From Setoptus koraiensis (lineage: Eukaryota > Animalia > Arthropoda), in assembly GCA_048013815.1 (NCBI GenBank), contig CM106585.1, positions 4,960,001-5,024,000 on the forward strand: DNA of 64,000 bases, given 5' to 3'. The notes below the pieces were generated by a model. It had not been told where the DNA came from, searched no databases, and saw only the letters and a list, made by a program, of their open reading frames with translations. A program made the translations under genes and the position numbers. Below, in pieces: positions 23,796 to 53,260 of this stretch. Position 1 is the first letter of the stretch. Each line of letters opens with the position of its first letter.

Positions 23796-26700
23796 ATCTT
23801 TTTCTTGGATGGAAAATAATTCATGCAAGATCGAATCGATGTTGAGAATTGGAATGACTTGAAGTTGGTGACTGTGCTCGTGAATTTCGTTGCTACAGAT
23901 GTCGGATCACTTAGAAATATATTTCATTGTCTTGTTATCTAGTATATCTCTCTTTTCGCTCTCCCTCTTTCTCTCTCTCTCTCTCTGATCTTCCTCTACC
24001 AGCTTGATTAAAACTTGGGTCAATCAACCCTGATATTGAATTAAAATCTATCTGCGAATGGACGGATTCATTCTATAACATTTAATTAATCCAGGTGTGA
24101 AGATAGTTTTCATACTAGGTAAGCCACGATGACCAGTTTGAGGTGTTACCTGTTGAATTAGATCTGCCAGTGTTGTCAGAGCAAGAGCATCCACTTTTAC
24201 AGCGCGATTTTTGAAAGGTAAAAAACTTCATGCGAGAAGTTCTAGAGAAACTCTACATAGAAATTAGTGCCTAAGCATCATCGTTGAGCATGGATCTTAC
24301 AAGGTAAATCGCCTTGGGGAGACAAACGGATCCAAGAGAAAATTAGGCACTATAACGCGATTAATCGTGGAATAGATCGTCGAAATTGTTTCTTTGGATA
24401 ATCCATGTGACGCATATTTCCTTTATTTATAATTGTAGCAAGCGCACTAATTGGGAATTCGACAGAACTTTGAAACTTCTTGCAAAAAAAATTGCGAGCA
24501 TCCGATGACAGACAGCGTATGATTTTATGATAGAAAATTCTCAGAAATCTGTGGTCATTTCAGAAATTAGGAAAGGGATGGATTTCTGGTGGTCCTTTCA
24601 TTCTTTAGTTCATCCAAGGAAATAACTTTCAAACGGGATTGTGAGCTGATGGGTGCATCCCAAAAAGAGGTTTCACTTGTACAATTAATTGATTGAATAG
24701 TTACAGCTTGGCAGAAAAAATCCTAAGTCTGCTACTGGACATGCATTCATTCCGTCTTTAGTTTAATTGATCTCTTTATTATGAGATCACATCTATTGAC
24801 CAATCTGTGGAGAGGATTCACTCTAAGAAATCAATAAAAAAACAAACATTGAAGGTGGGTCAATCCGTAGCTTCATTAACAGAGTGATCATTAATTCGAT
24901 CAAGTAAGAGCGACAATTAGATATGGTATAGCATATGGTCGACCAGTTTTGTGATCGAGTGCAACAACCAGGATAAATATTTATGTGACGGAGCTATATC
25001 GCACCCGAATTAAAAATCCTAAGTACCACGTAGAAGTGGAGTGTTCATAAATACAATTTATCATCCGTGGACATTCAAGAAAGCCCCTTTAACGGATATT
25101 AATTGATGATGTTGCGATTAGAAGTATTCTTAGACCCTTGTGAAATGCACCGTTGCATTGCTATTTCGTTGACTAGTTTTCAACCATCCCGAATTATAGG
25201 CATACCGGTTTAGAAAGTTTAGTTTTCGTGTTGTTCTCTCAGTTTGCCTTCTCTGTGAAATGGCCTGTATAATTAAACTAAAAAGATGCTCATATTGAAA
25301 TAAAAGATGGCGTAACTCACTCTGTGTAAGTATATGCCAAGCAACCTGACTGATGATTTTGTCACATAGAGGTTTCGTGTAAAACTTTTACACTAAAAGT
25401 ACATTCAGAATCAGTGTCTGTGAGCCAAAGGCGGCCCGTGTCCAAGTCAGACGCGTCGGCGTCGATGTTGTCCTATACCAGAGAAAATATCACTGGGAAT
25501 GCATCGTGTCGTCGCATTCATCGCTATTCGCAAATACAGTTGCGTAGAGAACGACATAATACAGCTTAGCTCCGTTGTACGCACGCACACAATGGGCGAG
25601 GTATCAAGGGCGGGGTTGTCTGAAAAAGTGCATGTGCATATTTTGTGTGTTTGTGTGCAAAAAATGTTGGAGGCACCGCACATTGGGAAAGAACACACTA
25701 AATCAACTGCATACATACTGTATAGAGTAATTGAGCTTCTAGCTTGCCGTTTTATGTGTTCATGACAAATTATGATGAGCTACAGTGGTGAATTTACAGG
25801 TGCTCACGGTCTTTGCGAAGAATTAACGGTCCTGTCAGTACTTTTGCAACTTAGCAAGCTTAAATCAATATGCTTGGCTCGGTATAACACGGATCGAACT
25901 CATTACCCACGGACTGAACAATTGTCAAGTGCAAACGACTGATATTAACTGCAGATTGAGTTGACAGCACAGCCTTTGAGCGTTTGTCTCGTCATTGATC
26001 ACACCATCTTGAAGTTGATCTCGGACTTGTTGGCACGACAGAAGCCACACTATCTCAGTTAGATTATCTTCATTTGGCAAGACAAAAGCTCTCTTTTGAT
26101 TTCCAACAATTAACACGGATTTGATATTAGATTGGAAGGTGATTTGTTTCCGGTTGCATTTATTCCCAGATCGGCCTGAAACAATTGCCTTCCGTGATCA
26201 CTCAGATCGTCAATGAGCTCAAAAAGGAACTGCTTAGTCAGAGTAAAGTAGATCCGATTTTGATATGGTCAGATTATCAAGCGCGATTCATGACAAATGG
26301 TTCTGCATATGTAGCATTTACACAATGCTGCATGTTTCAAGATCATTCTGTTGATAAGGTAGCTAACAAACAAATATCACGGCAGGGTGATCCTAATACT
26401 ATGTCTATGTGCACCGTAGATGTTATGTAAAGCATCAAATGTTAATCCAAAAGAGAAAAGTATCACTAACCTCAGCAAGCGCTCCCTTTTTGTTTTCACA
26501 GAGGATAGATGGGTTTTTAGAAACACATAAAACACAAAATTGCAATACAACAATTATCATAGCCCTGCAATAGGCGGTTGGCAATTATAAAGATAAACAT
26601 TAGTTAAATGTGCGATGAATTCTCATATACAACAACAACACTAACTAGATAAAACTAACAACTACACTGCACATGTACATATGACTTTTATATGTATTAA

Positions 26701-46077: not shown

Positions 46078-47745
46078 ATGCCAATTCTTGCCACTATGTG
46101 TGACTATATCGTTCACTGTATGAAAGAGGGCGACCTCGGCGCTCTGGAGAGAATAATCGACTCGATGAGCAGTATTAATGACGTTGTCCTGGTAGACGAA
46201 GAGAACAGCTTGAATCTGTTACATTTGGCAGCGGGGATCAGTTGCGATCATCGTGATAAAATTTTAGAATTTTATTTGGACCTCGGTGCTGATGCCAACT
46301 ATCCAGGAAAACAGGACAAAGTTTCGGGAGTACGTGCACTACACATAGCCGCCAGCTGGGGTTATGATGTCAGCGTCAAAATATTGTTACTTTATCAGGC
46401 TGACGCCTCTCTCAGGGATTCGGATGGATATTCCGCAATTGACTATGCTAGTGTCTACGACAATTACACATGCATATCAATACTACTCAAGTACGGATGC
46501 CTCAATACATCATCTGACACTAGCGAATGGTCGCAAGTCTTCGAAACTAGTGCTGGCGACAGCAGTACAGCCAGCTTTCAATTTGTACATAGGGGATCTG
46601 GGCAAAGAAATGCAGACAAGTCAGCAAATATCTGTGGTATTGACAAACATAAGGCCAATTTTCAATCTGTACAGAGCGAATCTCGGGATAAAAATGTTGG
46701 CAAGTTTGGAGATATTTGTGCTGATGATAAACATACATCTAGTTTTCAATTTGCACATAGAAAATCCCTGGATAAAAATGATGAAACACTAAAAGATTTC
46801 AGTGATGGTGACAACCACACAGCCACTTTTTATTATTCAATAGATGGAGAGTCTGAGGAAAGAAGTATCGAAAAATCGGATGGTAATTGTAGTGGTGATA
46901 GTAGTGTAGCTAGTTTTCAACTTGTGCATAGGGAATCGGTGGAACGAAACCTTGAAAAATTGGGAGATAATTACGCTCAATTCCTGCGCACAGAATTGAA
47001 GAAGTTTCATTACATCGCCGGACCAATAACCTCTACTACCAAGGGAGTTTACACAAAACTTTTGCTTTCATTCCAACGAACACAAAACCTGACAGAGCCA
47101 CCAACTTTGAGTATATTGAGTCAGAAACTTGGTTACTCTTCAGAATTGAGAAGTTTATTATCGGGTAGATTCCCATTCGACGAAGCCCAAGACTTGGAGA
47201 GGGAATTTATAGCAACAAGCGATAGCGATATGCTTCATGGGCCTAAGCAGTTCTTCAATTATCTACTTTTGGATCCTAGGATCAGTAAAAAGCTGTGTGA
47301 TCAGTTGGCATCCGATGGTGCTCCTCTAAACACGTTGCTATTTGCTCAATTCATCAAAGCTATATTCTACATAGGAAAAGGCCAAAAGAAGAGGGATTTT
47401 GCACATTTGTATGATGCTCTTGCAGATCGTGATGCCATTACCAAAGCCAAGATTGATCAAATCAGAAGCATCTGGTCTGATGGCTATGGAGTGGTGTCAT
47501 TGCATCTTTTTAACAATATTTCCGGGAAGGAAGCTCTCACTCGGGAAGCTTTAATGATTGAAGCCGTAGGGCTTGATAACCTGACTAATGTGCTGAAAGG
47601 TACTGTCAAAATTCGGATGGCGTGGAACGATCACAAGAGAAAGTTATTAGGAACTCTTCTTTTGTGGAAGGCTTTTAGCATATACTTAAACGAAGGCGAA
47701 AGACAACTCAGACGAGAGGATCTTAATGTACGTTTCGTGAGATGA
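46078..47745 (+). CDS. ANKLE1: ANKLE1/LEM-3 ankyrin-LEM-GIY-YIG endonuclease, intronless
   Basis: Ankyrin repeats (LLHLAAG, ALHIAASWG), a LEM-like segment (LRTELKKF..AGPITSTTKGVYTKLL), and a GIY-YIG domain (FNYLLLDPR...FYIGKG..KR...HL...REALMIEAVG). Confidence 0.9.
   Translation: MPILATMCDYIVHCMKEGDLGALERIIDSMSSINDVVLVDEENSLNLLHLAAGISCDHRDKILEFYLDLGADANYPGKQDKVSGVRALHIAASWGYDVSVKILLLYQADASLRDSDGYSAIDYASVYDNYTCISILLKYGCLNTSSDTSEWSQVFETSAGDSSTASFQFVHRGSGQRNADKSANICGIDKHKANFQSVQSESRDKNVGKFGDICADDKHTSSFQFAHRKSLDKNDETLKDFSDGDNHTATFYYSIDGESEERSIEKSDGNCSGDSSVASFQLVHRESVERNLEKLGDNYAQFLRTELKKFHYIAGPITSTTKGVYTKLLLSFQRTQNLTEPPTLSILSQKLGYSSELRSLLSGRFPFDEAQDLEREFIATSDSDMLHGPKQFFNYLLLDPRISKKLCDQLASDGAPLNTLLFAQFIKAIFYIGKGQKKRDFAHLYDALADRDAITKAKIDQIRSIWSDGYGVVSLHLFNNISGKEALTREALMIEAVGLDNLTNVLKGTVKIRMAWNDHKRKLLGTLLLWKAFSIYLNEGERQLRREDLNVRFVR
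46573..46970 (+). repeat. ~84-bp (28-aa) degenerate tandem repeat x~5 inside ANKLE1
   Basis: Units start SFQFVHR / NFQSVQS / SFQFAHR / TFYYSID / SFQLVHR at 28-29 aa spacing. Confidence 0.85.
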
Positions 47746-47874: not shown

Positions 47875-49536
47875 TCAATCAGAAATGTCTATGACTGGAG
47901 GTTCCTGTGATGGTTCTTTGTCGGCTTGACTACTAACCCTAACCTCTTTTAGCTTCGCTTCAACTCTTTTCACGGCAATAGGTTTAACTTCGATGGTCTT
48001 TGTTTCCTCTGACCTAACTTGTATTGGTTTGACCTCAATCCGCCTGGGTTCAATCGGTATGGGCTGTTTACTTGTTTGAATAAATTGAAGGAGGCTAGAT
48101 TGACGAGGTCCGCTTGGCACAGCAGGTTTTACCTCAATGCGAGCAGGGCTTTCCATGCGCGTCTTAGTTGCTGATTTGGGAGTTGCCATTTTGGGAGCTG
48201 TTTGCTTTGGAGTAGGATTCTTTAAAGGCTCAGGAGGAGTTTCCTCTTCTCCTAGTTCCTCATATTCAAAGATGGCGAAAGTACAGTATGCGTCTGTAGA
48301 TGAGATCATTAGAAGACGGGCATCGGATGACCAGGCTAGATCAGTCAAACGTGCCATGTGTATTTGAGAGAGGAGGTAAATAGGAGTTGATTGCTGGGAG
48401 TCATAAATTAACACAGATCTTGAGGTTGCAACTGCAAAAATCATTCTAAAAGGCAATTCTAGGACATTTTCTTCGTGCGCTCGAAGTTTAAAGTATTGTG
48501 GACAGAAGCGTACGCATAACGCACATTCTTTACCAGTTGGGTAGCTCACTAATGGTCTGTCAGGATAGAGGTTGAGAAGTCGAACATTAGAAAAACTTAA
48601 ATGATTTGTTTTTAGTATTCCAAGTCGTTATTGGAGTAAATTGCTTAATGTATCAACTTACTTGTTCAGACAGGTTCTCTTGTAAAGGAAACACGCATTG
48701 AGGGGACTTGCATCGCTGTTGGTTGATTGGATCAATCCAGAAGGTGCTAAAATGTACTGACCACATGGGGAGTATTCTATCCGACGACAAAATGATTTAA
48801 GCGTATCATCATGAAACATCGCCTTGTATTTGGCATTGCCATTATATTCAACTACAGAGCGTCTAGCTTTAAATGCAAGTTTTTTCTCTTTGTAGTCATA
48901 AACTCTGAGAGTTCTATCTGAGCTGATAGCAGCAAAATATTGATCTTGAGGATCGAAAGTTACTCCCTGTACAAATCCTCTACTATCATCACAAGAAAAA
49001 AGTTTGATGGACTTCTCAACGTTCCAAAGTATGACTGAATTATCAACTGAGCCAGAAACTAAATACTGACTGTCTTGGGACCAGCTCAAATCACATATAT
49101 CTTCTATATGGCCCCTAAGCACTTTATGTTGTTTCCAACATTCGAGGGATTGTACCTGATCTTCATTGCCAAAGTCTTGTGTTTGAATTGGTTCGGCGTC
49201 AGGGCATAATTGCCAGATAATAATATAGCCGTCATCGTCACCGGACGCTAGTAGATTAGGTTTACTTTTTGTTGAGAATCGTATTGCGCCGACTGCTTTC
49301 TGATGGCGTACTAGGCTAGCATAGACCTCTATGACATAAGACTGAGAGTTGAAGTTCCATATATAGACAGTGCCGTCATTGCCACCTGTTGCTAATTTAT
49401 ATTTAGAGTTGGGTTGCACATCAATACAAAGCACTGGCCCATGGTTGTGCCAAGAGATCTCAGGTGTATGCAATTTCTGCTGAGAAAATTGTACAGAATT
49501 ATTATTTGGATTTTGTAGTTGTGGTGCCTTGTCCAT
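47875..49536 (-). CDS. CHAF1B: chromatin assembly factor 1 subunit B (p60/Caf1-105), WD40 (2 exons)
   Basis: Exons 49536-48662 and 48556-47875 join in frame (518 aa). Motifs HTPEISWHN, LATGGND, LVRHQKAVGAIRF, LRGHIEDICDLSWS, VQGVTFDP, MFHDDTLKSFCRR, LELPFRMIFAVAT, IHMARLTDLAWSSD, plus IEVKP B-domain-like repeats in the tail. Confidence 0.92.
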
Positions 49537-51046
49537 GTTTTGCCCCAGAAAAAAATATAGGCGATAATGGTATTAATAGTAAAAATATCGATGGGTTGTA
49601 TAAAACGATTAGGTAACGTGGGGTATAATTAACAATTTACCATAAACGACGATAATAGTGATAATTGTTTTGCTTTGTTGTCATGTAATAATAATAAATA
49701 TATATATAGATATATGATGACAACGATGATGACTATGATGATGATGGTGATGACGAACAATGGTGGTGCTGCTGTTGTTGAGTTGTAGTGCTTGTTAGAG
49801 TAGTTGCAGTAGTTGCGGTAGTTGCTGTAGTTGCAGTAGTTGCTGTAGTTGCAGAACACACAATGCTGCGAAGGCACAGCAGCATAAGTGGTGGTGCTAG
49901 TTGTAGTAGAAGTATGGGTGCTTTTGGCGCCACATTCAAAGTGAAAAAAATGCTTATTGAGGGGGAGGCATGTCTCCCCCTCTCACCTCCCTGTTTCAGG
50001 AGGTCGGGGAGCGGGAGGTGGACCTCCCCACCTCCCCCGATCACTAAAAATGCTTCCAGGCCGGGGAAAAAACTCCTGCCATCCTCTCTTCTTCTCTTAT
50101 CGGGCTCCCGCTCGACAACTCTTTCATAAGTTCTGAAATAATCGCACTCTCATGAAAATAATTCATGAATCCAAACGACGTCGTCTGTCATTGAGTGCGC
50201 GCACGTTTTTGCGATAGATCTCAAAATTCTTTCGATTTCTAAATTAGTGCGCTTACTACCATTCAAAACAGTGGGGGCACGCGCAACATGAATTATTCAA
50301 CTATTTCGGAAACGACAAGTTGAATAGAAAAATGTTTATTTTGAGGGTTAAACAATTCTTCGGATCTGGATCAACCAATATTCTCCTGGATATGGGTGTC
50401 CGCCCTAAGAGGTTCAACTTGTGAGCATATGAAATGCTGCATTTTTGCACTTTGAATATGGCGCCAAAAGCTCAGAAGAAATAATCGACCTAACTGTGAT
50501 TGCATTAGACTTCGTACAACAACAACTACCACACAACCACCCATACTTCTACTAGCGCTACTACAGCAACTACTGCCATCACTACTACTACTACAACTAC
50601 CACCACTACTACTACAACTAGCACCACCACTGATGCTGCTGTGCCTTCGCAGCTTTGTGTGTTCTGCAACTACAGCAACTACTGCAACTACTCTAACAAG
50701 CACTACAACACAACAGCAGCAGCACCACCATTGTTCGTCATCGCCATCATCATCGTAATCATCATCATTGTCATCGTATATATATATAAATTTATATATA
50801 TATTTATTATTATTATTATTTATGTTGTCAACAAAGCAAAACCACTATTATCGTAGCTTATGGTAAATTATTAATTACTCCCCACGTTATCTAATCGTTT
50901 GATTCGACCAATCAGACAACACTGTACAGCATCGATATTATTGCTATTAATACCATTACCGCTCATATTTTTTTCTGAGGAAAAACATGGACAAGGCACC
51001 ACAACAACAAAATCCAAATAATAATTCTGTACAATTTTTTCAGCAG
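49477..51046. repeat. inverted segmental duplication (arms 49477-49953 and 50439-51046)
   Basis: The left arm is the reverse complement of the right arm, with internal deletions. Both contain ATG GAC AAG GCA CCA CAA and the upstream CTA/CAG-rich low-complexity region. Confidence 0.93.
49961..50114. mobile_element. G/C-rich multi-hairpin remnant, possibly a non-autonomous DNA transposon end
   Basis: Hairpins GGGGGAG-gcatgt-CTCCCCC (49961-49980), ACCTCC-n8-GGAGGT (49985-50004) and TCGGGG...GGGAGGT-gg-ACCTCCC...CCCCCGA (50004-50040). No TIR pair or TSD identified. Confidence 0.35.
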
Positions 51047-53260
51047 CCTCAACAACACAATTTCCATACAGACATGGCCACCACAACTAATACTAGACCT
51101 AATGTTGCCAATCCAACAGCGGAACAACAACAACAAAATACTAAATCTACAACAAATAATAATCAAACTAATAATGATGGGCGCGGTATTTGCCTAAGAC
51201 GATGCGATCACAATTCAAAATTAAGCACCGCATTATCACACATGCTTCAAAAGGAATTTATGGTGGATGTTACAATTTATTGTGATGATGGACAACTAAA
51301 TGCTCACAAGCTAGTGCTAGCTGCTTCATCATCTTATTTTCGTAGTTTGTTTCTCAAAATGCCAAACACACATCATTATCCTATTATTGTCTTGAGGGAC
51401 ATAGCTATCATGGACCTCAAGACTGTCATAGACTTCATGTACTATGGCGAGGTTACAATCACATCGGAACGATATGATTCAATTATGAGATGCGCAACTT
51501 TCCTACTAGTCGAAGGTATCTCAAATTCACTTAACAATATTGTCGCTACCTCACAACAACACGGCACATCGCAATACAAGATGACTACACCATCGTCAAC
51601 ATTGATGCAAAATATGTCAGCTGGGCAGAACATATTACCTGGTAAACATAGGGCTCCACCAGGCAGACGACAGAAGCGTCGGATGAAATCTAACGAGGAT
51701 GTGGCTGGGGGTGATAAAAACTTAACTGATTATCACAATACATTGGGGGGAGCACATGTAGATTTTCTTCAAGGTTATAACAACTCGGACTATAGTGGCA
51801 ATTTGGACACTTCCCATGACCAGCTCATGAATGGAGAGGTAAGCAACATTTTTATACTTTTGACCGATATTTTCCCTTATTATTCAATCAAAACTGACAA
51901 TGTGCTTATTTGTTCTTTCTGAAGATATTCCAGAATTCAAGACTAGGGCAAAATGGTCACTCCAGTTCATTACCTGGTAAGTTATACAACAACCGTCTCA
52001 AATACGGAGATACGGTTTGTATCGGTGTGTCTGCAAATGAAAAGACGGTTCCCACCCGAAATGACCTGCGTCCACACACATGTGTTATGTATGTATGTTG
52101 AAAATGTTAACAAAACTTTCCCATCCTTGTTATATATGTTTAATTGTTCATCTAGCTCAAGGTGACAGTCTAGTTCTCCACCGACAATTTCACGAACACA
52201 GCGCCTTAAATCATCACGACCACCAGCGAATTGTAAACTCACTGAACTCCAACTGTGTTGATTGCAGTACCAAAGGGGGACAAAAAAGCAATCGAGCTAA
52301 GCACCCTTGTACTATTTGTTTCAAGACATTTACGCATGGATTCACTTTGAAAAGGCATATTATGCAAACTCACACACAAAATAGATTAAGTTTCTATTGT
52401 GAACTATGTTCTAAAAATTACAGCTGCAGGGATAGTTTCCTTCGACACAAAAAATCGTCTTCCCATCGACAGCAATCAGAATTTCGTTGAAGATGGACTT
52501 CTGTCTTACATGTATATATAGCAAATGTATATATGAACAATAACAATTACCCAAACTATGTCCATACTAATGTAATATGTAAATCTCTAATATTATTTTT
52601 TAAGATATGAATCAGTTATTGCTTCAGAGTTTCCTACAGCTTCTGATGAATCAGGCATTCAATCAGTCGCCTCTAGCACTACAGAAGTCGCCACCCTTGA
52701 GCCAGAGCGAATCATCTTTTCCGGCATCCAATGCCGGCTATCCAATCACACCGGCACAAAATGTTTTATTGGATAACAATGTTGCTCATGCATTCAAGTC
52801 ACAGGAGGTTATAACCAACAATGTCCAAGCGGAACCCAAAGCTCGTAAAGTCAATAAGATCGAATCCATCAATAATCTGAACAAAGAGAATCTAGTTCCA
52901 CATGAGTACAAATGTGAAATGCCAAACTGTCCTAGAAGCTACAAGAACGGTGCTTCACTTAAGCGTCATCATACCTTAACTCATAGTATCAAGTTCGGCG
53001 ATATCTCTTGTGACACTTGTAAGAAGAAATTCAAGAATGAGATATTCTTGAAAAGGCATAGCCGCAGTCACCATTCATCTGTTAATACATTAAACTGTCC
53101 TATCAAGATGGAGGACGAAAAAGAGCAATCTTCCAGCGGGACTACTATCAATTACGCGTTGAAAAATTGCAACTCTATGTCTCAAAGGAAGATGACTGAT
53201 TATTTGACGAAGCCGAACAAAAACTTCGCTTCAGCAGATAGTTCACAAAACCCAAGATAA
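50987..53260 (+). CDS. BTB-C2H2 zinc-finger transcription factor (ttk/lola/broad type) with two alternative ZF exons
   Basis: BTB domain (DVTIYCDDGQLNAHKLVLAASSSYFRSLF...IDFMYYGEV). Exons 50987-51838 and 51925-51976, then either 52156-52490 or 52605-53260; both are phase-1 acceptors and each encodes a C2H2 pair. Confidence 0.85.

Follow-up and report, generated by a model that had tools for sequence, protein, structure and literature searches.

Chimeric genes have usually been studied as extra, dispensable copies. Arm-to-arm gene conversion within inverted repeats is known from the inverted Hsp70 pairs of Drosophila and from sex-chromosome palindromes, and most accounts of inverted duplications of the FoSTeS/MMBIR type concern pathogenic or somatic structural variants. 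Chimeras that arose by partial gene duplication include Drosophila jingwei, Sdic, and Hun (reviewed in PMC3449122; for Hun, see PMC1463047). At the mite locus considered here, as in these Drosophila genes, an unrelated gene body has received, in frame, a duplicated fragment with the promoter, 5' UTR, and first codons of another gene, and the donor has stayed intact. The Drosophila chimeras, however, are extra genes whose parents both survive, whereas here the sole copy of an essential gene has been rebuilt in place. Its own start codon was destroyed, and the duplication is inverted, local, and situated between head-to-head neighbors. The recipient is CHAF1B, encoding CAF-1 p60, and the donor is the adjacent BTB-ZF gene, both contained in the window (the whole stretch of 64,000 nt that was analyzed). 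Our preferred reading, to which we assign a probability of roughly 0.78, is that the CHAF1B-side arm of an inverted repeat was overwritten within this lineage and that CHAF1B captured the leader in the process.

A repeat search and affine-gap global alignment placed the arms of the inverted repeat at 49477-49953 (- strand) and 50438-51046 (+ strand). With the left arm reverse complemented, the alignment comprises 410 matches, 33 mismatches, and nine indels (92.6% gap-free identity), a similarity far above chance (blastn E = 6e-125; E = 5.8e-121 in a whole-genome search). The left arm lacks segments of 67, 60, 20, 10, and 8 nt and carries 27 and 6 nt of extra sequence, the other two indels being 1-nt gaps. 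The arms are linked by the colinear repeat pairs I2 (49477-49593/50930-51046; 117 nt, 92%), I4, I1, and I3, and by I15 (49920-49949/50442-50471; 93%). The noncoding part of the left, CHAF1B-side arm (49537-49953, - strand) is the BTB-ZF upstream region copied in inverted orientation, with the five segments deleted and a 27-nt microsatellite gained. The noncoding part of the right, BTB-ZF-side arm (50438-50986, + strand) is the donor upstream region, orthologous to arm A of a sister species (contig L045, positions 1-421). An earlier note on this DNA had described the repeat as ending precisely at CAGCAG, and this is indeed where identity stops in both arms (49477-49482/51041-51046). The common start that it reported for the divergent open reading frames (ORFs) is equally clear: both open with MDKAPQ[L/Q]QNPNNNSVQF[S/F]QQ, and 58 of the 60 coding nucleotides of the leader are identical. 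Beyond CAGCAG, and across a 12-nt gap, AAATTGCATACA resembles AATTTCCATACA, but the stretch is too short to tell from chance. An Rfam scan of 49300-51200 returned nothing but bacterial sRNA noise far below threshold.

Long-read assemblies are known to go wrong by creating palindromes, and a chimeric or palindromic misjoin could in principle have produced the left arm. We regard this as extremely unlikely. Artefactual palindromes are identical, whereas 33 substitutions and 9 indels separate these arms. Moreover, the junction is in frame within a gene under selection, an inverted repeat also occupies this locus in the independently assembled sister species, and the 48.8-Mb assembly contains no further copy of CHAF1B.

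CHAF1B is encoded on the - strand by two exons, with a first ORF at 48658-49536 and a deduced protein of 518 amino acids. The captured leader, MDKAPQLQNPNNNSVQFSQQ, spans 49477-49536 (ATG at 49534-49536 followed by 19 codons) and matches 50987-51046. It is followed by the native part of exon 1 (48662-49476), which encodes the beta-propeller from Lys21 onward (KLHTPEISWH), by a 105-nt intron (48557-48661; GTAAGT...ACAG) with an in-frame TAA inside and at the same place as the sister intron, and by exon 2 (47875-48556), which encodes the end of the propeller and a C-terminal tail. The exons were searched separately against profiles and structures. Exon 1 matched the CAF1B/HIR1 propeller profile PF24105 at 3.1e-90 and 303 bits (residues 21-291, profile positions 2-280), and exon 2 matched the same profile at 130 bits (positions 285-383), the cut-off being 80.5. 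The best PDB matches were human CHAF1B structures (7y5k_B and 8iqf_B; E = 2e-59), with residues 2-272 of 7y5k_B aligned, and the top database matches carry the name chromatin assembly factor 1 subunit B. Judged by its domain, the predicted protein belongs to CAF-1 p60 and is not a HIRA paralogue. In whole-genome profile and protein searches CHAF1B was single-copy; the only other match to PF24105 above the cut-off was a HIRA-like open frame of 1,089 amino acids at C2:7.97 Mb, with 32% identity. Comparison with the sister species points to purifying selection, dN/dS being 0.048 in exon 1 and 0.11 in exon 2.

The N terminus of this protein is unusual in carrying 20 extra residues, which does not affect its domain membership. 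Residue 2 of human CHAF1B and position 2 of the Pfam propeller profile both align with residue 21, and essentially all of approximately 55 complete homologues start with M-[K/R/Q]-x-x-[T/I]-P-E-I-S-W-H and have no extension. These comparisons uphold the earlier statement that orthologues begin near MK-x-x-T-x-EI-x-WH. The Met1 of the homologues aligns with Gln20, whose codon (CAG, 49477-49479) occupies the position of their ATG. The next in-frame ATG of the ORF is codon 240, which leaves the borrowed ATG as the only plausible start, and CHAF1B is probably translated from it. A leader that goes unused, because another first exon is spliced to the CAG|AAA junction or because translation starts at a non-AUG codon, would be compatible with the appearance of the junction (TTTTCTCAGCAG), which resembles a splice acceptor in having a polypyrimidine tract followed by AG. 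In the BTB gene and in two other copies, however, this acceptor-like sequence clearly lies within coding sequence, where indels come in multiples of 3; the Met of the homologues directly precedes Lys, and no intron is present at this point in the sister species. Given also that the ORF is unbroken from a well-placed ATG (AAAACATGG) and that its next ATG lies so far downstream, we consider an unused leader highly improbable. In an AlphaFold2 model the leader has a pLDDT of 44 to 50 and no secondary structure, suggesting that this 20-residue Q/N-rich tag is probably disordered. A protein collection queried for the exact product of the chimeric exon 1 contained no record of it.

On the donor side, the leader MDKAPQQQNPNNNSVQFFQQ forms the first 20 codons (50987-51046, + strand) of a 311-amino-acid ORF (50987-51922) with a BTB/POZ domain at residues 84-186 (PF00651, 1.8e-22). 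It is followed on the same strand by two ORFs with matches to the zf-C2H2 profile, of which that at 52607-53260 has one match barely above the cut-off (25.4 versus 25.2 bits) and that at 52080-52490 has weaker, subthreshold matches. Read separately on one strand, these ORFs fit a predicted member of the BTB-C2H2 zinc-finger class. The BTB orthologues of other mites have variable, Q/N-rich N termini; in two older copies of the module the leader runs on into BTB sequence, as far as residue 33 in one and about residue 215 in the other, and across copies the indels in and just past the leader stretch are multiples of 3. This pattern supports a leader that is native to the BTB gene, with copying directed from BTB-ZF to CHAF1B. 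Donor and recipient are thus both identified, the reading frame continues across the junction, and the BTB-ZF ORF has been left whole; the leader identity and the native BTB leader bear out the earlier proposal of a chimeric gene with a BTB-ZF donor. Two distant loci begin with this BTB 5' module as well: a BTB::MAD1 fusion and a third ORF, for which Pfam gave no match and the protein atlas gave weak helical-repeat look-alikes only. The module was also considered as a mobile element, an idea that was rejected on finding just four copies genome-wide, all nested segments of the BTB locus; the remaining genome-wide matches were microsatellite matches only. Likewise, an RNA-mediated origin by retrocopying or template switching, suggested by the similar far boundary of the copies, was rejected in the case of CHAF1B, which keeps its intron and synteny.

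For the order of events we compared one close relative, the sister species represented by Logan contig L045, an independent short-read assembly from sample SRR33593474. Its CHAF1B protein (P0001, 273 amino acids, 94% amino acid identity) starts with MKLHTPEISWH from a native ATG-AAA-TTG, and the contig retains both the CHAF1B-ANKLE1 synteny and the CHAF1B intron. Positions 1517-4308 of L045 are colinear with 49477-46654 of the window (82.6%), and the alignment ends at the ATG/CAG codon. The prefusion state is therefore present in a related lineage. The check that had been proposed on CHAF1B 5' ends in relatives has thereby been run, with a sister protein starting MKLHTPE and some 55 homologues without the leader. 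Together, this one relative and the universal MK start, on which the polarity rests, support the leader-bearing CHAF1B as the derived state.

Upstream of the sister CHAF1B, positions 1146-1514 of L045 are colinear with the module (63 to 71% identity; E of 1e-15 to 4e-21) and inverted relative to positions 1-421. As read from these alignments, the sister has, ahead of CHAF1B, a decayed inverted repeat of the module that is older and does not include the leader. Homology between the arms thus predates the event, and the capture was a second, postspeciation step. The single inverted duplication envisaged in the earlier note does not survive this comparison, since the repeat is older than the leader. 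Identity between the sister's arms is approximately 65 to 82%, versus 92.6% in this species; arms so much more alike in one species than in its sister are the usual mark of arm-to-arm conversion, as in Hsp70 pairs and palindromes. Within a shared 170-nt block, the BTB and CHAF1B arms of the window are 94.7% identical and the BTB arm of the window and arm A of the sister are 89.9% identical, the differences unique to each being 2 in the BTB arm of the window, 5 in its CHAF1B arm, and 14 in sister arm A. Overall, the arms of the window have diverged by 7.4%, against a between-species dS of 0.58 to 0.93. Dating from such figures is rough, as upstream sequence is partly constrained.

The same comparison bears on whether the leader might be ancestral, an old inverted duplication having fused ATG and 20 codons to CHAF1B and the sister having later deleted 60 nt, with decay of the sister arm and conversion keeping the arms alike in this lineage. 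The sister's module similarity may extend to the ATG context, and one in-frame deletion could restore ATG-AAA. Yet this history takes three events instead of two, one of them a codon-exact deletion that remakes the universal MK start. In addition, the sister CHAF1B arm is equally far (63 to 69%) from every leader-bearing copy, and the last 50 nt before the sister ATG are AT-rich and weakly aligned. An ancestral leader accordingly appears very unlikely. The sister BTB protein was not found by two word-based protein searches, and L045 runs out some 250 nt upstream of where the BTB start is expected; judging from the older paralogous copies only, the sister BTB gene may well carry the leader. In two more distant mites (L046 and L047), CHAF1B has other neighbors upstream and no such repeat.

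We propose the following history. Before the species split, CHAF1B (-) and BTB-ZF (+) would have stood head to head, their upstream regions already forming two inverted copies of one module: an E2F-like site plus a conserved block distally, then a microsatellite-rich stretch, and an end near the ATG. CHAF1B would at that stage have used its own ATG (MKLHTPE...). After the split, and in this lineage only, sequence of the BTB-side arm would have been copied over the CHAF1B-side arm. The copying would have passed the BTB start codon and continued 60 nt into BTB coding sequence, to be joined in frame to CHAF1B codon 2 with at most 1 nt of microhomology and with loss of the native ATG. Most likely, a break near the CHAF1B start was repaired with the inverted arm as template, by gene conversion between the CHAF1B and BTB-ZF arms, with end joining as the last step; a second fold-back duplication accompanied by deletion has much the same likelihood. 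CHAF1B is essential and has no second copy, so only a product that was in frame and brought a new ATG could survive. That product would be a 518-amino-acid CAF-1 p60 with transcription-proximal DNA, a start codon, and a 20-residue tag derived from BTB-ZF. Of the earlier claim that start and promoter were replaced, the first half stands, as the native ATG seen in the sister is gone; as to the promoter, the sequence replaced was itself an old copy of the module. Gene conversion in Hsp70 pairs and palindromes homogenizes paralogous genes, whereas here it would have acted on the upstream DNA of unrelated genes, in a tract that overran into coding sequence.

The route of repair is where a single new fold-back duplication in this lineage, without help from the older repeat, has to be weighed. 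It would differ from our preferred reading in this respect only: during replication, synthesis at CHAF1B codon 2 would have switched template to BTB codon 20 on the opposite strand and copied back about 600 nt, and the return step would have removed most of the former spacer together with what had previously lain upstream of CHAF1B. Part of the evidence comes from the spacer. It contains a GC-rich, MITE-like insertion of 90 nt (49956-50045) with terminal inverted repeats, flanked by the 10-nt direct repeats AAAAATGCTT (49946-49955 and 50046-50055) and with copies at C2:18.94 Mb (76 to 81%). Most of the spacer is filled by a dispersed repeat (50121-50431), an old transposon remnant that abuts the right arm and has at least eight copies at 68 to 79% on both chromosomes, one of them at 24394-24575 of the window. 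Once these two elements are discounted, about 70 nt of spacer are left, which is typical of fold-backs. We detected no homology between the spacers of the two species, and the sister spacer was absent when searched for in this genome. The spacer has thus not stayed unchanged, and the insertions in the window account for only part of the difference. Since in-place conversion would keep the spacer, this mismatch fits a new fold-back with deletion better. In-place gene conversion would otherwise need additional deletion and insertion events. The microhomology of at most 1 nt at the coding-side junction, the inverted copy beside its source, and the short spacer are all shared with FoSTeS/MMBIR fold-backs, although in contrast to those variants CHAF1B represents a fixed, selected, in-frame product. 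Against a new fold-back, the far boundary of the repeat in the window (49953/50438) lies about 15 nt from the old boundary in the sister, at the AATATGGCGCC core. Such agreement is expected from conversion within preexisting homology but would be a coincidence under a new template switch. Taking both sides together, we rate a single new fold-back as a serious contender, at somewhat less than even odds, and retain overwriting of the older arm as the preferred reading.

Whichever route was taken, an essential, single-copy, replication-coupled histone chaperone probably survives on the start of an unrelated neighbor, and the "before" state in the sister, together with the older repeat, makes this a datable and readable case of promoter and N-terminus movement in compact genomes. 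A more speculative thought, doubtful on present evidence, is that palindromic promoters of head-to-head genes might be a recurrent engine of N-terminus swapping in this mite lineage. If so, where two neighbors share an inverted upstream module, repeated arm-to-arm repair could run past it into coding sequence and give new starts even to single-copy genes that are essential. CHAF1B/BTB would then display two stages, a promoter-only repeat in the sister and a promoter plus 20 codons here, and copies of the same BTB module would also have reached MAD1 and a third gene.

As to the borrowed upstream DNA, the distal end of each arm carries an E2F-consensus-like motif, TTTGGCGCCA (49923-49932, + strand, in the left arm; 50459-50468, - strand, in the right arm). 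These are its only two matches in 64 kb, against 0.04 expected, and the sister species has kept the motif in each of its arms. In this species and in the sister alike, every arm has a single TTTGGCGCC, 390 to 540 nt from the ATGs, which fits the E2F consensus TTTSSCGC cited in PMC3333892, a paper that lists human CHAF1B among E2F7 targets. The arms may thus harbor a putative site for E2F-type control. No E2F-like motif was found near CHAF1B in the more distant mites L046 and L047. Adjoining the motif in the BTB arm is a 67-nt block (50471-50537, + strand) that has been deleted from the CHAF1B arm. The absence of this block, conserved in every other copy, from the CHAF1B arm weakens the case for coregulation of CHAF1B and BTB-ZF. 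The block itself persists in the BTB arm, in the copy on chromosome 2, and in the two arms of the sister species, between which its 38-nt core is 92% complementary.

CHAF1B, the gene for the histone chaperone CAF-1 p60, and its head-to-head BTB-ZF neighbor open with nearly the same 20 codons. On the minus strand, ORF, Pfam, and splicing comparisons place CHAF1B exon 1 at 48662-49536, followed by a 105-nt intron (48557-48661, GTAAGT...ACAG) and exon 2 (47875-48556), with a deduced protein of 518 amino acids; each exon was used separately in homology searches. The BTB/POZ plus C2H2 zinc finger gene runs from 50987 on the plus strand, and both reading frames begin with MDKAPQ[L/Q]QNPNNNSVQF[S/F]QQ. 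A repeat search linked 49477-49949 with 50442-51046 through colinear inverted pairs (E = 6e-125 for the match between the arms), and affine-gap alignment of the CHAF1B-side arm (49477-49953, reverse complement) with the BTB-side arm (50438-51046) gave 410 matches and 33 mismatches (92.6%). Nine gaps interrupt this alignment: the CHAF1B arm lacks segments of 67, 60, 20, 10, and 8 nt and has 27 and 6 nt additional, the remaining two gaps being 1 nt each. The repeat search and the alignment bear out the inverted repeat of both upstream regions and the shared ORF start described in the earlier note, and identity between the arms indeed ends at CAGCAG, as it had claimed.

The leader is foreign to CHAF1B. 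Position 2 of the Pfam CAF1B/HIR1 propeller profile corresponds to residue 21 of the CHAF1B protein, human CHAF1B residue 2 aligns to this same residue, and in a 35-sequence alignment Gln20 occupies the column of the homologues' initiator Met. Of ~55 complete homologues, a set ranging from mites to molluscs, essentially all start with M-[K/R/Q]-x-x-[T/I]-P-E-I-S-W-H without extension, in agreement with the expectation that orthologues begin almost directly at MK-x-x-T-x-EI-x-WH. The N termini of BTB orthologues in other mites are Q/N-rich and variable ahead of a conserved MAVIKRPQHN.KL motif, so that a Q/N-rich leader fits the BTB gene. Two additional copies of the duplicated module in the genome have a leader that runs on into further BTB sequence. 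In every copy, indels in the leader and just downstream have lengths divisible by three, which is not so for indels of the upstream arms. The profile and homologue starts at residue 21 and the BTB-contiguous leader copies uphold the proposed chimeric nature of CHAF1B, with the BTB-ZF gene as its donor.

A sister species, known from a 5.5-kb contig (L045) of the Logan assembly of run SRR33593474, appears to preserve the state before capture. Its CHAF1B protein (P0001, 273 amino acids) is 94% identical to residues 21-292 of the window protein in a word-based protein search, and the contig keeps the intron of CHAF1B as well as the ANKLE1-like gene downstream. The sister CHAF1B starts with ATG-AAA-TTG..., i.e., MKLHTPEISWH, and the colinear alignment with the window (2835 nt at 82.6% identity) has its first position at L045:1517, equivalent to window position 49477 and the third base of the ATG/CAG codon, so that the leader is absent from the CHAF1B of this otherwise base-for-base orthologous relative. 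For close relatives the comparison of 5' ends comprises this one species, and it confirms the earlier view that the leader is derived. Were the leader instead ancestral and subsequently lost in the sister, a further event would be required, along with a codon-precise deletion, a scenario that we consider very improbable. The sister is moderately distant (67% identity at four-fold degenerate sites), with a dS of 0.58-0.60 for CHAF1B and 0.93 for ANKLE1. CHAF1B dN/dS values of 0.048 (exon 1) and 0.11 (exon 2) point to strong constraint on this gene. The sister BTB start was not recovered in protein searches. The best named match to the window CHAF1B is that of Aceria tosichella, at ~50% identity.

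The sister also carries an older repeat. The 370 nt upstream of its native CHAF1B ATG (L045:1146-1514) form a colinear but decayed copy of the same module (63-71% identity to the window arms and other copies, E 1e-15 to 4e-21), whose inverted partner, L045:1-421, is orthologous to the window BTB arm (84% overall, 89.9% in the best-matching block). Conservation is highest in a 38-nt core, over which the sister's arms are 92% complementary (L045:380-417 and 1146-1183; window 50459-50537). This decayed inverted repeat indicates that CHAF1B and BTB-ZF had a common upstream module in inverted copies before the two species separated, when CHAF1B still had its own ATG. It also bears on the possibility that the CHAF1B arm is an assembly artefact, which is unlikely because the arms have diverged from each other and because the independent assembly of another species shows a repeat at the same locus.

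The timing of the capture can be judged from a 170-nt block found in three arms. In this block, the window BTB and CHAF1B arms are 94.7% identical, compared with 89.9% for the window and sister BTB arms and 88.2% for the window CHAF1B and sister BTB arms; unique differences number 2 in the window BTB arm, 5 in the window CHAF1B arm, and 14 in the sister BTB arm. Therefore, the window CHAF1B arm is, on these identities, a copy of the window BTB arm made after the split and not a descendant of the old CHAF1B arm, which in the sister is equally distant (63-69%) from every leader-bearing copy. The earlier note had proposed a single inverted duplication that replaced the native start. The chimera, its direction, and its derived state stand, but the single step does not: the comparisons point to two steps, a promoter-side repeat first and leader capture after the species split.

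In the second step, everything upstream of CHAF1B codon 2 was, as the alignments show it, replaced by BTB-arm sequence, with at most 1 nt of microhomology at the coding-side junction. One possible route is break repair close to the start of CHAF1B with the homologous inverted arm as template, synthesis running 60 nt too far into BTB coding sequence before the end was joined in frame. Such a route is favored by the preexisting homology between the arms and by the end of the window repeat, which lies within ~15 nt of the old repeat's end in the sister. Alternatively, and about as probably, a fresh fold-back template switch may have been accompanied by a deletion. This would fit the spacers, since those of window and sister have nothing in common, the sister spacer is absent from the S. 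koraiensis genome by genome search, and the window spacer measures only ~70 nt after discounting two insertions, a MITE-like element at 49956-50045 (90 nt, GC-rich, having both terminal inverted repeats and direct repeats of 10 nt, AAAAATGCTT) and a dispersed repeat at 50121-50431. The former sits in an AT-rich spacer and has related palindromic copies at 18.94 Mb of chromosome 2. Whichever route was taken, CHAF1B is essential and single-copy, and selection would have let through only products that stayed in frame and brought an ATG with them.

Whole-genome searches found exactly four copies of the module, the two window arms and two elsewhere. One heads a BTB::MAD1 fusion 263 kb upstream of the window (G000:C1:4747097-4748404, plus strand; L004:1653-2963), in which ~230 nt of upstream DNA and BTB residues 1 to ~215 precede a MAD1 C-terminal domain in one 436-amino-acid ORF. 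It carries the MDKAPQ leader, and its BTB portion is a partial copy of the window BTB-ZF gene, the identified donor (71% identity over 256 amino acids, 83% over the first 188). The MAD1 part, the sole Pfam MAD match in the genome, corresponds to residues 52-226 of short MAD1-like proteins of related mites. These (P0159-P0173) measure only 240-290 amino acids, and the long N-terminal MAD1 coiled coil seems to be missing throughout this mite group.

The other copy (module at G000:C2:10260190-10260587, minus strand) belongs to a third chimera (G000:C2:10259230-10260587; L003:493-1557), with ~600 nt of BTB upstream DNA and 33 BTB codons (to ...TDMA) heading a 354-amino-acid ORF that matched no Pfam family and gave only weak helical-repeat look-alikes in the protein atlas. 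In a block where the orthologous arms share 90%, this copy shares 78% with the BTB arm, and so is probably older than the species split. That the leader belonged to the BTB gene before its capture by CHAF1B is again supported by this copy. The CHAF1B case contributes an intermediate stage, in the sister species, and one donor common to three chimeras. A paralogue of the third ORF's body, 97% identical, lies 127 kb from it (L039, G000:C2:10131029-10134976), inside a HEAT-repeat gene that by eye we take to be VPS15. There it is flanked by a ~50-nt direct duplication of host coding sequence, the peptide MDKECSHQFCGSSSQS being read on both sides, and part of the host gene also lies nearby in inverted orientation; the arrangement suggests either scrambled sequence or an insertion that splicing would have to remove.

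No second CHAF1B came up in six-frame searches covering all 48.8 Mb of the two-contig assembly, the next-best match being a HIRA-like gene (32% identity). Since the native ATG is also absent, the following in-frame ATG is codon 240, where a start would cost most of the propeller, and the context of the borrowed ATG is good (AAAACATGG), we strongly infer that CHAF1B uses the borrowed start. In an AlphaFold2 model of exon 1, built on an alignment with 34 homologues, the propeller is confident (mean pLDDT 83.6) and the leader unstructured (pLDDT 44-50).

The 38-nt core holds TTTGGCGCC, which matches the E2F consensus TTTSSCGC quoted in a paper that lists human CHAF1B among E2F7 targets (PMC3333892). 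In window and sister alike, each arm carries this motif just once, and the motif's two occurrences in the 64-kb window compare with 0.04 expected. The core is probably a core promoter or E2F-type element common to both genes. It includes AATATGGCGCCAAA... and, after it, ...AGAAATAATCGACCT, and is ~92% kept between the sister's otherwise decayed arms. The window arms are not equivalent: the 67-nt block adjoining the E2F-like motif is gone from the CHAF1B arm but kept in the BTB arm, both sister arms, and the chromosome 2 copy. This loss weakens the possible co-regulation of CHAF1B with the BTB-ZF gene that the earlier note had suggested.

Downstream of CHAF1B, the ANKLE1-like gene (46078-47745, plus strand; ankyrin repeats, LEM, and GIY-YIG) contains an internal array of degenerate ~45-amino-acid units (...SFQF.HR...), and its protein measures 555 amino acids in the window species and 515 in the sister.
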